The notes: generated from the letters alone by a model not told the origin. DNA of 64,000 nt from Bugula neritina (GCA_964035545.1 OZ037771.1:124001-188000); one strand, 5' to 3'. Counted from the stretch's first letter, positions 2,849 to 59,650 are shown. Made by a program: numbers and translations.

Positions 2849-5800
2849 ATGTATTTTCAAAATATCTTAATCAGTTATGAGCTTCCTAGCTTTCGATATT
2901 TTTTATCGACATTGCTCGTGGCCATAAGCTTAGTGTATTTCTTATGGAAGCGCACTAAAGAATGGAAACTTATTCAACTAATACCCAGTTTCAAACCATG
3001 GCCTTTGGTTGGAGATATGCTTAGCATCAAGACGGATCCTGTTGGTTAGTAAAAAGACCCATCTTTCTAGCTAAACACTCTAATGAGCATAAACTTTTAA
3101 GCTATATAAATGTCTGGCATACCCTTCATCCCACTCAGTATACTCATGTTTTATTAGTATGTATTTTTCTGCTGACCCAATTGCTCTACTATAATTATAT
3201 CAGCTCTAAATTTTATAAATTATCGATATTATTTCAGAAGCTTTTTCGGAATTTCTGTGCAGAATTGAAAATAAAAGGCAAGATGGAGTGAATATTTTCA
3301 GACTGATGGTGCTGGAGACTCCGTGGATTGTTATTTACTCAGCAGATACATTTGAAAAACTTCTCAACAACAGTGTAAACCTAACAAAGTCTAGTGAATA
3401 TGATGTGCTTCATAGATGGTTAGGGCTGGGACTGCTGACAAGGTATATAATGTGCCTCAGTGTTCTTGTGACAGTAAGCAGTGTTCTTGTGACAGTAAGC
3501 AGTATTCTTGTGACAGTAAGCAGTGTTCTTGTGACAGTAAGCAGTATTCTTGTGACAGTAAGCAGTGTTCTTGTGACAGTAAGCAGTGTTCTTGTGACAG
3601 TAAGCAGTATTCTTGTGACAGTAAGCAGTGTTCTTGTGACAGTAAGCAGTGTTCTTGTGACAGTAAGCAGTGTTCTTGTGACAGTAAGCAGTGTTCTTGT
3701 GACAGTAAGCAGTGTTCTTGTGACAGTAAGCAGTATTCTTGTGACAGCAAACAGCGTTATTGTGACAGCAAACAGCGTTATTGTGACAGTAAGCAGTATT
3801 AAGGGTAAGGTTTTAGACATTGTAGCTTATTGCAGTGACGGAGCCAAATGGAAAAGTCGCAGAAGGATCCTCACCCCTGGCTTTCACTTCAGTATTCTGC
3901 AGGACTTCATGCCGCTGATAAACAGCCACGCTCAAGAGCTGACGGATAAACTCATGAGGAACGCGTGTGATATGGGAGAAGCCTATGATATCTACGACGA
4001 CATCGCCTTGAGTACCCTTGACATCATCTGTGGTGTGTTTCTAATCAGCTCTTTTGTGTATTACTTTAGAATCCACCAGCTCTCTTTAGAGTTGTGTTTA
4101 CTGCTACAAGTTAAACCCCAAATCTCTTCTCATGTTGTATATCAGCGTTGGTATATATATCAGCGTTGGTATATAATGTATCTCAGCGTTGGTATATATA
4201 TATATATATATATATATATATATATATATATATATATATATATATATATATATATATATATATATATATATATATATATATATCTCAGCGTTAGGGAAGA
4301 ATTAGAGTTGGGAGTAGCCTGTTTATCTTATTGTTACAGATACAGCGATGGGCACTCAAGTCGGTGCCCTGAGCGGGGGACACAGCAAGTATGTCGACGC
4401 CCTCAATACCATCAAACAAGGCATTGATGACCGCAACCGCTCTCTCTTTCAGCGCTCTGATTTCTTGTTCAATCTCTCGTCTAGAGGAAGAAAGGTGAAC
4501 AGGGCTATAGCCTTGACACAGAAGTTCACTCTCCAGGTTAGCAGGAGCACCTGTTGTGTCAATAGCAGGAGCACCTGTTGTGTCAATAGCAGGGGCACCT
4601 GTTGTGTCAATAGCAGGGGCACCTGTTGTGTCAATAGCACCGGGAGGGTGATGATTCTGTGACACCGCTCCATCAGCTGACATGTTGTAGGTGATTGAGC
4701 AAAGACGGGGAATGGATAGAACTGCGGGATACGAGGGGAAGAAAAAACACAAGCCTTTCCTCGACCTTCTGTTAGACTGTACAGGTGACGATGGACTTCC
4801 TTTGAGCGACTCTGATATACGGGAGGAAGTAGACACTTTTATGTTTGAGGTAAGAAAGTATTAGTTATATATATATATATATATAATGTTTATTTCACTG
4901 CTCGTAGTTAGTGTGCATAATTTATAACAATTTTCATGTATTTAGTATAATGTAATATAATAATAAATTATAATATAGTATTTGAGTAATGGTATGGTAT
5001 AATCATAGTGTCATGTTAACTCACTCAGGGTCAAGATACTACTTCTTCAGCCATTGCCTTCACCATCTATCTGCTGGGAAGGAATGTTGAAACTCAAAGG
5101 AGATGCCAGAGAGAACTTGATGATGTCATAGGTAAGTATTACAGTTATTTCTATATAATTCTATACTATATATAATACTATACTATATATAATACTATAC
5201 TATATATAATACTATACTCTGTATAATACTGTACTCTATATAATACTATACTCTATATAATACTATACTCTATATAATACTATACTCTATATAATTCTAT
5301 ACTATATATAATACTATACTCTGTATAATACTGTACTCTATATAATACTATACTCTATATAATACTATACTCTATATAATACTATACTCTGTATAATACT
5401 ATACTCTATATAATACTATACTCTATATAATACTATACTCTGTATAATACTATACTCTATATAATACTATACTCTATATAATACTACACTCTATATAATA
5501 CTGTACTCTATATAATACTATACTCTGTATAATACTATACTCTATATAATACTACACTCTATATAATACTATACTATATATGATACTATACTCTATATAA
5601 TACTACACTCTATATAATACTATACTCTATATAATTCTATACTATATATAATACTATACTCTGTATAATACTGTACTCTATATAATACTATACTCTGTAT
5701 AATACTATACTCTATATAATACTATACTCTGTATAATACTATACTCTATATAATACTATACTCTATATAATACTATACTCTGTATAATACTATACTCTAT

Positions 5801-57200: not shown

Positions 57201-59650
57201 TGATATGAAGGTAGTGATATGAAGGTAGTGATATGAAGGTAGTGGTAGCGATATGAACTTACTATCAAACAATTTGATGATATGCCGGTGCTGAAATCTC
57301 CTGAGATACTGTATTTCTTTCAAATCATGTGTCGTTTCTAAACAGGGACGATAACTCCGGAGTTCTCGTTTACACACATGATCACCTGAGTTGGTGAGCT
57401 TTATGATCATATACCTACAGATAGATAGTATGATGTACTATATTACTAGCATATGATCATATACCTACAGATAGTATGATGTACTATATTACTAGCATAT
57501 GATCATATACCTACAGATAGTATGATGTACTATATTACTAGCATATGATCATATACCTACAGATAGTATGATGTACTATATTACTAGCATATAATCATAT
57601 ACCTACAGATAGATAGTATGATGTACTATATTGTTAGCATATAATCATATACCTACAGATAGATAGTATGATGTACTATATTGTTAGCATATGATCATAT
57701 ACCTACAGATAGATAGTATGATGTACTATATTGTTAGCATATAATCATATACCTACAGATAGATAGTATGATGTACTATATTGTTAGCATATAATCATAT
57801 ACCTACAGATAGATAGTATGATGTACTATATTACTAGCATATGATCATATACCTACAGACAGATAGTATGGTGTACTATATTACTAGCATATAATCATAT
57901 ACATAAATACCTGTGATTATGTTCCTCATAGCCAACGAAAATGTTTGAATAGCAGCCTTTATATAAATGTTCTAGACAGAATATTCCATGAGATGTAATG
58001 TCTCTAATAGATGTATCTAGACAGTTCTTTCCTGTAGACATCAGTGTCTTCTTACAGAGAGGTAAAGGGGGATATTGGTGTTCTATGCTGTGACCTGGGT
58101 ACAAGTTGTATACTGAGATACTAGTTATATACTGAGATACTAGTTATATACTGAGATACTAGTTATATACTGAGATACTGGTTATATACTGAGATACTAG
58201 TTATATACTGAGATACTAGTTATATATACTGAGATACTAGTTATATACTGAAATACTAGTTATATACTGATATACTAGTTATATACTGAGATACTAGTTA
58301 TATACTGAGATACTAGTTATATACTGAGATACTAGTTATATACTGAGATACTAGCTATATACTGAGATACTAGTTATATACTGAGATACTAGTTATATAC
58401 TGAGATACTAGTTATATACTGAGATACTAGTTATATATACTGAGATACTAGTTATATACTGAGATACTAGTTATATATACTGAGATACTAGTTATATACT
58501 GAAATACTAGTTATATACTGATATACTAGTTATATACTGAGATACTAGTTATATACTGAGATACTAGTTATATACTGAGATACTAGTTATATACTGAAAT
58601 ACTAGTTATATACTGAAATACTAGTTATATACTGATATACTAGTTATATACTGATATACTAGTTATATACTGAGATACTAGTTATATACTGAGATACTAG
58701 TTATATACTGAGATACTAGTTATATACTGATATACAAGTTACTTACTTAGAGGGCATTTAACTTTGCAGACAATGCTGTTCAGTTTAGCATCTGATCCAT
58801 CTGATATTATAGCCATACATTCATGAGGTTTACGATAACTAGGAGAGGGTCTCAATCCGTCTCCAACAGCTGCACAATTATCAGCATTTCTAACAAATCC
58901 AGTAGCACCGCTGTAGATTAAAGAGTTCATGTAAACTGAAAGTGAAATGAATATGGAAGGCACTAAAATGTTTAATATAATATAATACCATGTAGTCACA
59001 GCAACTAATAGACTCACCATTAATAACTAATGACTGCTGGTAACTCACTACTAATAACTAATGACTACTGGTAACTCACCGAGTGTCTGGAAAAAGCCGC
59101 CCGTGAGGGAGAGAGAGCACCTTTGAGAAGGCACTCACAGACTTTGGTGTGACCACAGAGTCCGCCATGCGGTCATATCTGTGAAAGGAAGTGTGGGCGT
59201 GTCCCAACTGACTCTGTGCACCAACGATGCCTGGCAGCGACACAGACGAGCCGCGAGCATGATTCAGCCCATCCCTGGTGTCCCCAGTGTCGGTGTCCCT
59301 GCATATATACGTGATGTGTGTGTGTATACGTGATGTGTGTGTGTGTATATACATGATATATGTGTATATACATGATATGTGTCTATACATGATATATATG
59401 TGTATATACATGATATGTGTGTATACATGATATATATGTAAACTACAATACTAATATATTATATAGATGTGTGCGAGTGTGTAGAAGAGTAAAAGTTTAC
59501 CACTGACATGGGTTCAAGGGTGTCATGAGCCGACTGGTTGTAGTTTCTCTCAGAAAGTGAGATCCCACTAACAGACTTGGAGATCTTATTTGGTGGAGAG
59601 GAGGAAGATTGCTCAGTTAGCATCAACAAGGGGGCGTGACTACTGAACAT
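54228..59650 (-). CDS. CAMK-group (TSSK-like) kinase-fold protein, probably a pseudokinase; ~9 exons (59650-~59467, 59300-59080, 58911-58748, 58093-57911, 57414-57263, 56266-56109, 55780-55652, 55568-55328, 54372-54228)
   Basis: Subdomain order IIK, EIQYLRRFQHRHIIKLFD, ILLEFCCNG, KYFRQMFSAVNYIH, VKLID, GFQAPE, ADVWSLGACLYSMVTG, RDLLSGML..PDCR. Confidence 0.82.
54440..58737. repeat. Private intronic arrays in the pseudokinase gene (54440-55325; 55790-56085; 14-bp 56320-57257; 46-50-bp 57403-57900; 20-bp 58088-58737)
   Basis: Directly visible tandem units. Confidence 0.93.

Follow-up and report, generated by a model that had tools for sequence, protein, structure and literature searches.

Minisatellites that occupy introns have their closest described counterpart in amphioxus, where the 'mirage' minisatellites of the Adh3 and globin genes are intron tandem duplications with units of ∼10–160 bp, some of them spanning an exon–intron boundary, which may be at either end of the intron (PMC3087553, Ebner et al. 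2010; Canestro et al. 2002 via it). In that report mirages repeat the AG/GT signals with normal splicing undisturbed, undergo concerted evolution and are proposed as a route of intron gain, their mechanism being called unclear; it also cites the Rogers model of intron gain, in which tandem duplication of an AG/GT segment creates extra splice sites. Here we analyse 64,000 nucleotides of the bryozoan Bugula neritina (GCA_964035545.1 OZ037771.1:124001-188000; this whole stretch is referred to as the window), for which an initial annotation, made from the sequence alone, had claimed that almost every internal intron holds its own unique minisatellite and that long intergenic spacers have essentially none. 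Our data show that most introns of the window are indeed filled with tandem arrays, nearly all with private units, and that this abundance is a regional feature of the genome.

Like the mirages, the Bugula arrays are intronic minisatellites, and some of their units cross an exon–intron boundary. Mirages are known from few loci, whereas in the window 74% of introns and ∼76% of intron DNA are involved; only ∼12 of the 67 strong arrays touch a curated exon edge, the remainder being mostly purely intronic. The Bugula arrays also differ by a purine–pyrimidine grammar, by being missing from spacers, by regional concentration and by their host, which belongs to a different phylum. Two arrays (6999–7226 and 24520–24734) are duplications of the kind envisaged in the Rogers model; what is lengthened in Bugula are existing introns, and no newly arisen intron was shown. 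Human variable number tandem repeats (VNTRs) occur commonly in genes and show enrichment at promoters, untranslated regions (UTRs) and regulatory DNA, without being excluded from intergenic DNA (PMC8096271). The Bugula arrays share with human minisatellites and VNTRs the 7–100 bp units, the privacy of each locus and, as we propose below, expansion by out-of-register recombination or replication. In contrast, many human VNTRs are GC-rich, and they make up ∼0.5% of the genome as against three quarters of local intron DNA here. Classical human hypervariable minisatellite loci cluster toward chromosome ends, and the human rare fragile sites FRA16B and FRA10B carry AT-rich minisatellite units of ∼30–40 bp that expand to kilobases. 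A few Bugula arrays are likewise strongly palindromic; unlike the fragile-site repeats, however, the arrays of the window are intronic and numerous, and of 20 that were folded 8 do no better than shuffled sequence, or do worse. Intronic tandem repeats go unmentioned in the two genome papers on Bugula neritina, and a full-text literature search returned no report of intron-wide minisatellites in bryozoans, nor of minisatellite enrichment in introns. What is new in the window is the contrast between introns and spacers, together with an apparent distal bias and the grammar that the arrays have in common.

Gene models were obtained as a splice-aware, frame-consistent exon chain scored by window-trained codon usage, followed by gap-by-gap manual curation, and names were checked by Pfam on single exons (p450, ABC_tran, IF4E, Pkinase, IBR and GT11 are supported, Myb weakly). 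Tandem Repeats Finder (TRF) gave 153 rows for the window, which merge into 82 arrays at score ≥50; strong arrays are those with score ≥100. There are 67 of these (the initial annotation had counted more than 40), and they cover 26.3 kb, or 41% of the window. Their periods range over 2–86 bp (median ∼26), with a median of 11 copies and a median identity of 93%; 61 have a period ≥12 and are minisatellites in the usual sense (10–100 bp units, head-to-tail), with 2–74 copies at 78–100% identity. Higher-order periods (21/42/63, 23/90, 45/137/182) are present as well.

The distribution of the strong arrays is very uneven, 59 of the 67 lying inside introns between coding exons. At least one array is present in 54 of 73 introns (one in 49, two in 4, three in 1), so that 'most' introns is correct and 'almost every' is too strong; first and later introns of the window do not differ significantly in array carriage. 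Arrays make up 76.5% of intron DNA (31.7 kb), 1% of coding exons and 10.4% of the 18.2 kb outside coding spans. When one unit per array is counted as the original sequence, 59 arrays fall on 9.3 kb of introns versus 8 on 16.5 kb of the rest, a 13-fold difference (p = 1e–18). The five spacers singled out by the initial annotation (8.8 kb) are essentially array-free as it had claimed: a single AT-only run of score 100 is seen where ∼56 arrays would be expected at the intron rate (p = 2.6e–16), with the caveat that the limits of these spacers had been drawn around arrays. The array density of five chromosome-interior blocks, described below, would predict ∼0.8 arrays in the same spacers. Hence it is the introns, and not the spacers, that are out of the ordinary.

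The eight strong arrays outside coding spans begin at 58, 15873, 32915, 33467, 47124, 49114, 50179 and 54060, all ≤1 kb from a gene end, and probably sit in predicted UTRs or UTR introns; for two of them, between convergent genes, the predicted location is probably a 3′ UTR, and the array at 47124–47357 is probably inside a 5′-UTR intron, judging by the acceptor-like word in each unit. The restriction of arrays to transcribed non-coding DNA is real, transcription status being taken from predicted gene models. An array at 8723–8934 may be a coding repeat instead of an intronic one: its 33-bp unit (11 codons) is open in frame on the minus strand, and it adjoins a Ser/Ala/Pro-rich exon of the Myb-like gene.

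Intron length is usually ascribed to transposable elements (TEs) and small indels. In this window it is set by array growth, in agreement with the claim that tandem amplification is its main driver: arrayed introns have a median length of 408 bp and a non-array remainder of only 55 bp (median), compared with a median of 114 bp for array-free introns. The median distance is 15 nt from the donor to the array start and 20 nt from the array end to the acceptor. Direct reading of the sequence gives the same picture, with arrays that start shortly after the donor and stop shortly before the acceptor, and with the 150–300 bp gaps between arrays corresponding to coding exons.

The units are overwhelmingly private. 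In exact-unit or BLAST tests against the Bugula genome, true siblings were found for only 1 of ∼42 arrays. Exact-unit tests showed the 70-mer, 53-mer and second 17-mer (27624) arrays to be private; the 29-mer array is private as well, and ∼40 other arrays have no match of ≥85% among the best 39–40 candidates scored in each search of the window against its own genome. AT-rich arrays do resemble many others at 66–81% identity; such matches vanish when the exact unit is required and therefore reflect shared composition or grammar rather than shared descent. The absence of unit reuse holds inside the window at the exact level and nearly holds genome-wide, failing for the 17-mer TCTATATAATACTATAC of the array at 5150–5959, which is matched at 93–95% over 810 bp at other loci. 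Exact dimers of this unit occur at four loci, the window plus C4:24628468-24629248, C5:136874-138303 and C7:999320-999370 (reversed control, 0); all four are ≤1 Mb from a chromosome end, three of them 130–170 kb from it, and no p450 exon lies near the three non-window loci. A second exception is of another nature, as the (TA)n 'arrays' at 39456–39611 and 39877–39998 are the ends of an element resembling a miniature inverted-repeat transposable element (MITE).

Several units hold the edge of the adjacent exon. Units that span a junction and thereby repeat a splice site are seen in a minority of arrays, with the donor repeated at 6999–7226 and the acceptor at 24520–24734; in the latter, every copy except the last would put a stop codon in frame if used. 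The reading frame is kept across arrayed introns. Local birth of most arrays, as opposed to delivery by transposons, is therefore supported by the privacy of all but one of ∼42 units and by the exon edges that several of them contain. Many arrays are 95–100% identical internally, which suggests, without proving, that amplification is recent or ongoing. Searches for a second assembly or individual gave no exact gene record and just a protein of 93% identity on a contig of 1.3 kb, and none of the metagenome contigs contained a 32-mer from an ABCC exon.

Although their unit sequences are unrelated, all arrays belong to one strand-symmetric compositional class. Purine–pyrimidine alternation is 0.68 in arrays (>0.5 in 63 of 67) versus 0.52–0.55 in non-array non-coding DNA and 0.50 in interior blocks. 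Runs of three or more A or T contain 1.4% of array bases compared with 12% in introns and 19% in spacers. Observed/expected (o/e) values are 1.76 in arrays versus ∼1.0 for TA, 1.57 versus ∼1.15 for GT/AC and 0.27 versus 0.91–0.96 for AA/TT, while CpG stands at 0.21 in arrays, 0.39 in non-array intron DNA and 0.53 outside coding spans. The compositional trend is the same in arrays of the interior blocks. Since the grammar is strand-symmetric, it is a property of the DNA duplex and not of the transcript; and since array-free introns and spacers are alike in composition, availability of seeds does not explain the intron/spacer contrast.

Folding potential was considered separately. A general hairpin or cruciform drive was rejected, as 20 arrays folded as single-stranded DNA gave z values against shuffles between –13.9 and +4.6, the median being near –0.5 (negative in 12 and positive in 8, ≤–2 in only 5). 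Inverted repeats occur in 24 of 54 units versus 17.3 ± 3.0 in shuffles. By far the most hairpin-prone of the window's arrays is that at 9774–9920 (20/40 bp), which is built on the perfect 14-nt palindrome AGTAATATATTACT and folds at –30 kcal/mol as single-stranded DNA (z = –13.9).

The pattern is real but regional, and is not general to introns or to transcription in this genome. The window corresponds to chr7:124001-188000 of 15.81 Mb (assembly tzBugNeri2.1, nine chromosomes) and thus lies 0.12–0.19 Mb from the chromosome end, in the terminal 1%. It should be noted that 'distal' is defined here by chromosome coordinates, as (TTAGGG)5 is absent from both strands of the assembly; either telomeres were not assembled or the motif differs. 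For comparison we took five 40-kb interior blocks (200 kb) at round coordinates, at 5, 12, 19 and 26 Mb of chr1 and 3 Mb of chr2. By TRF, arrays cover 4.2, 0.9, 3.5, 2.9 and 6.3% of these blocks versus 41% of the window, and 7 of 44 putative interior introns (∼16%, from rough exon predictions) are arrayed versus 54 of 73 (p = 9e–10). The introns of interior mt-HSP70 and MFAP1-like genes, which are likely housekeeping genes, are free of arrays, so that the idea of intron arrays as a genome-wide rule fails. Compared with random placement, interior minisatellites do not lie significantly nearer to predicted exons, in an underpowered comparison (n = 17, p ∼0.1–0.16), and a relaxed TRF search for decayed arrays in array-poor introns returned mostly noise, flagging 14% of exons. 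Of 38 distinct loci that resemble the AT-rich arrays of the window, 20 are ≤1 Mb from a chromosome end, compared with 9% of the genome (p = 8e–12).

To account for these observations we lean, without strong confidence, towards private minisatellites that are locally seeded and expanded by out-of-register copying in a distal domain, that belong to one sequence class and that are confined in a strand-symmetric way. A short piece of an originally short (∼100 bp) intron would be tandemly duplicated; expansion and homogenization would proceed via replication slippage or, among sister or homologous chromatids, via gene conversion or unequal exchange, and the array would grow until the unique sequence is down to ∼15 nt beside the donor and ∼20 nt beside the acceptor. 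A seed that took in the junction would have repeated its splice site along with the rest, so that the exon-adjacent copy is predicted to be the one used. The process would be strongest in the distal chromosome domain and ∼4–5 times rarer per intron in interior regions, and the units that it favours or leaves behind would be those with alternating purines and pyrimidines, rich TA and GT/AC steps, few A/T runs and little CpG. The distal bias would reflect a regional property of DNA replication or recombination. On general grounds, the confinement to introns and probable UTRs may be a strand-symmetric property of transcription units, for which the candidate causes are that torsion from supercoiling opens alternating sequences or that homologous repair favours transcribed chromatin, selection against arrays in compact regulatory spacers perhaps contributing.

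Several points weigh against this proposal. Its regional part relies on one distal window, five interior blocks with approximate exon predictions and the coordinates of similar arrays, and the enrichment of the latter at chromosome ends may partly concern long subtelomeric satellites rather than intron arrays. Gene-level factors must act beside regional ones, since in the chr2 block (3.00–3.04 Mb) an unkempt-like zinc-finger gene at 18.1–25.0 kb has six intron-abutting minisatellites and its MFAP1-like and histone H3 neighbours have none. Hairpin potential, moreover, is not general among the 20 arrays that were folded.

The initial annotation had suggested that arrays arise through strand-specific generation coupled to transcription or splicing (R-loops, slippage in transcription-coupled repair, or a spliceosome-linked process), in which case the introns of any expressed gene would fill. 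Such a process fits the presence of arrays in introns and probable UTRs only, while spacers of the same composition lack them. We nevertheless consider it improbable, as none of the asymmetries looked for is seen. On the sense strand, 30 of 59 intron arrays have a positive G/C skew (p = 1), with no G-rich non-template strand; the T>A skew of arrays (0.07) equals that of non-array intron sequence (0.086), and their window-strand, replication-type skew is not significant (p = 0.2). Splice-like words are found in units in sense and antisense alike (donor 30/24, acceptor 13/11, branch 5/7), the depletion of AA (0.28) equals that of TT (0.27), and gene orientation has no effect, with 28 of 39 plus-strand and 26 of 34 minus-strand introns arrayed. 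Genes of tissue-restricted type (P450, ABCC) are as full as translation-factor genes, and the interior mt-HSP70 and MFAP1-like genes are empty. In addition, exon CpG o/e, a proxy of gene-body methylation, does not tell array-rich genes from array-free ones, the lengths of units have no helical (10–11 bp) or codon periodicity, and units at array edges have not diverged significantly more than those in the centre. Routes by R-loops, repair or splicing therefore gain no support, although some strand-symmetric process linked to transcription units may act. A different view of the same contrast is that arrays are born uniformly throughout a hot domain and then removed from spacers, by selection on regulatory DNA or by large neutral deletions that are barred in introns. 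The spacers are short (0.7–2.8 kb) in a genome of 216 Mb, arrays outside coding spans are all near gene ends, and TEs are tolerated in spacers and rare in introns, so the two compartments are evidently under different regimes. However, more than 97% of arrays would have to be lost (1 seen, ∼56 expected) from spacers that accept TE insertions of 0.4 to >1.5 kb, and internal contraction of arrays is possible in either compartment. Since extra length is thus tolerated in spacers, selective purging is weakened as an explanation, and we hold this scenario to be unlikely, if less so than coupled generation.

Delivery by mobile elements, or by dispersed satellite families landing in introns, would account for the P450 intron 6 array with its three further loci, for the pair of (TA)n runs that an RBR-gene intron carries as part of a MITE with at least 40 copies, and perhaps for the resemblance among AT-rich arrays. 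As an origin of the arrays in general it is very improbable in view of the private 70-mer, 53-mer and second 17-mer, the ∼40 arrays without a match of ≥85% among the candidates scored, the loss of resemblance at the exact-unit level and the host exon sequence held by several units. The last possibility, collapse or expansion of repeats in a long-read assembly, we find hardly credible: the copy number of very long arrays can be mis-estimated and nothing else specific speaks for it, whereas arrays contain ordered internal variants along with the higher-order periods, lie precisely between frame-consistent exons and come from an assembly with a quality value (QV) of 53.7, and a second data set contains 64% of the words sampled from a 6-kb stretch. 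Local seeding with out-of-register expansion remains our preferred explanation. A bolder version of it, which we put forward only tentatively, is that distal, strand-symmetric amplification of short alternating seeds lacking A/T runs is itself confined to transcription units, that private arrays are the main determinant of intron length in such domains, and that amphioxus mirages are a by-product of the same process.

The genes, arrays, spacers and elements of the window are collected in Table 1. Dispersed repeats of the window (12551–12971, 13750–14381 and 62443–64000) have at least 20 to 40 copies each among the matches listed, and a 162-codon open reading frame at 13905–14392 belongs to the second of them and is not an exon of the Myb-like gene. 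TEs occupy array-free stretches, and introns contain only a solo long terminal repeat (LTR) and one MITE; the direct pairs of this LTR elsewhere are full LTR retrotransposons. Most protein-kinase matches in the assembly lie on small contigs (e.g. C206:3952-4716, C190:255-1004) with many in-frame TAA/TAG and almost no TGA codons, which suggests that a ciliate whose stop codons are reassigned was co-assembled.

Table 1. Genes, tandem arrays, spacers and transposable elements of the Bugula neritina window, with positions counted from its first nucleotide
Feature	Position	Strand	Basis
Glycosyltransferase family 11 gene, one coding exon	438–1268	+	Pfam PF01531, E = 3.7e–25
Cytochrome P450 gene, 9 coding exons, 6/8 introns arrayed	2849–7450	+	PF00067 on two exons
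Myb-like gene, 5′ end uncertain, 4/4 introns arrayed, 7 arrays in total	7793–12222	-	Weak Myb_DNA-bind_6 match
ABCC-type ABC transporter gene, ∼27 coding exons, 18/26 introns arrayed	17262–32889	+	PF00005 on two exons; frame-consistent chain
RBR-type (HOIP-like) E3 ligase gene, ∼19 coding exons, 12/18 introns arrayed	34093–43770	-	IBR and B-box matches
Small gene, 3/3 introns arrayed; initial name EIF1AD unconfirmed	45637–47122	-	Single short exons without Pfam match
eIF4E-family gene, 4/5 introns arrayed	50430–53403	+	PF01652, E = 5.9e–16
Protein kinase gene, 7/8 introns arrayed	54123–59650	-	PF00069
Unnamed two-exon gene, 70-bp intron without array	60477–61176	-	Exon chain
21-bp x16 array filling P450 intron 2 (3443–3835)	3458–3797		TRF
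17-bp x48 array, unit TCTATATAATACTATAC, P450 intron 6	5150–5959		TRF; siblings elsewhere in genome
45-bp x5 array, unit is last 39 nt of P450 heme-motif exon plus donor site	6999–7226		Base-by-base reading
23-bp x41 array upstream of ABCC start codon, in 5′-UTR intron or promoter region	15873–16810		TRF
52-bp x4.6 array filling ABCC intron 12 from +2 to –13; frame continues across intron	24104–24344		Read directly
30-bp x7.2 array, copies 100% identical, unit is acceptor (tactgtag) plus first 22 nt of next ABCC exon	24520–24734		Read directly
Largest array, 1559 bp long with 21/42-bp unit; intron has just 7 nt outside it	25871–27429		TRF; other loci match at ≤80%
17-bp x54 array, private	27624–28551		All 37 matches to 34-mer (≤3 mismatches) within array
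50-bp x2.5 array between convergent ABCC and RBR genes, probably 3′ UTR	33467–33592		TRF
31-bp x41 array, 98% identity, last intron of RBR gene	34250–35522		TRF
70-bp x4.2 array, private	38680–38970		Genome search, self match only
29-bp x34 array, private	42467–43464		TRF and genome search
28-bp x8.4 array ending 3 nt before start-codon exon, acceptor-like ttattgtag in each unit	47124–47357		Read directly
Spacer without strong arrays	1270–2850		TRF scores ≤59
Spacer without arrays, unique sequence	43800–45500		TRF
Spacer with only weak AT-only repeats, best score 100 for run 49114–49207	47900–49900		TRF
Spacer without strong arrays	59700–60370		TRF
Spacer without arrays, dispersed transposable element from 62443 on	61200–64000		TRF; genome matches
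Dispersed 420-bp element, at least 20 copies at 95–99% identity	12551–12971		Genome matches
Dispersed 630-bp element, at least 20 copies at 92–94%	13750–14381		Genome matches
Solo LTR, ABCC intron 4	19000–19410		Same 410 bp elsewhere in direct pairs 5.4–5.6 kb apart
MITE-like element of ∼480 bp with TA-rich inverted ends, RBR-gene intron	39500–39981		At least 40 copies, 91–100% identity, both strands
Dispersed transposable element running past window end	62443–64000		Genome matches

In this part of an animal genome that is compact, private tandem repeats make up three quarters of the intron DNA, and the neighbouring spacers take transposable elements instead. If the restriction to introns is mutational, it points to a mechanism that is tied to transcription units yet shows no strand signature; if it is selective, short intergenic DNA would be under unusually strong constraint. 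Should the bolder reading of distal amplification be true, it would amount to a regional, chromatin- or supercoiling-linked growth of introns that is undescribed in any animal. For the study of splice-site choice the region also provides natural ladders of identical splice sites by the dozen, and it extends to a second phylum the little-studied 'mirage' phenomenon, for which a role in intron gain has been proposed.

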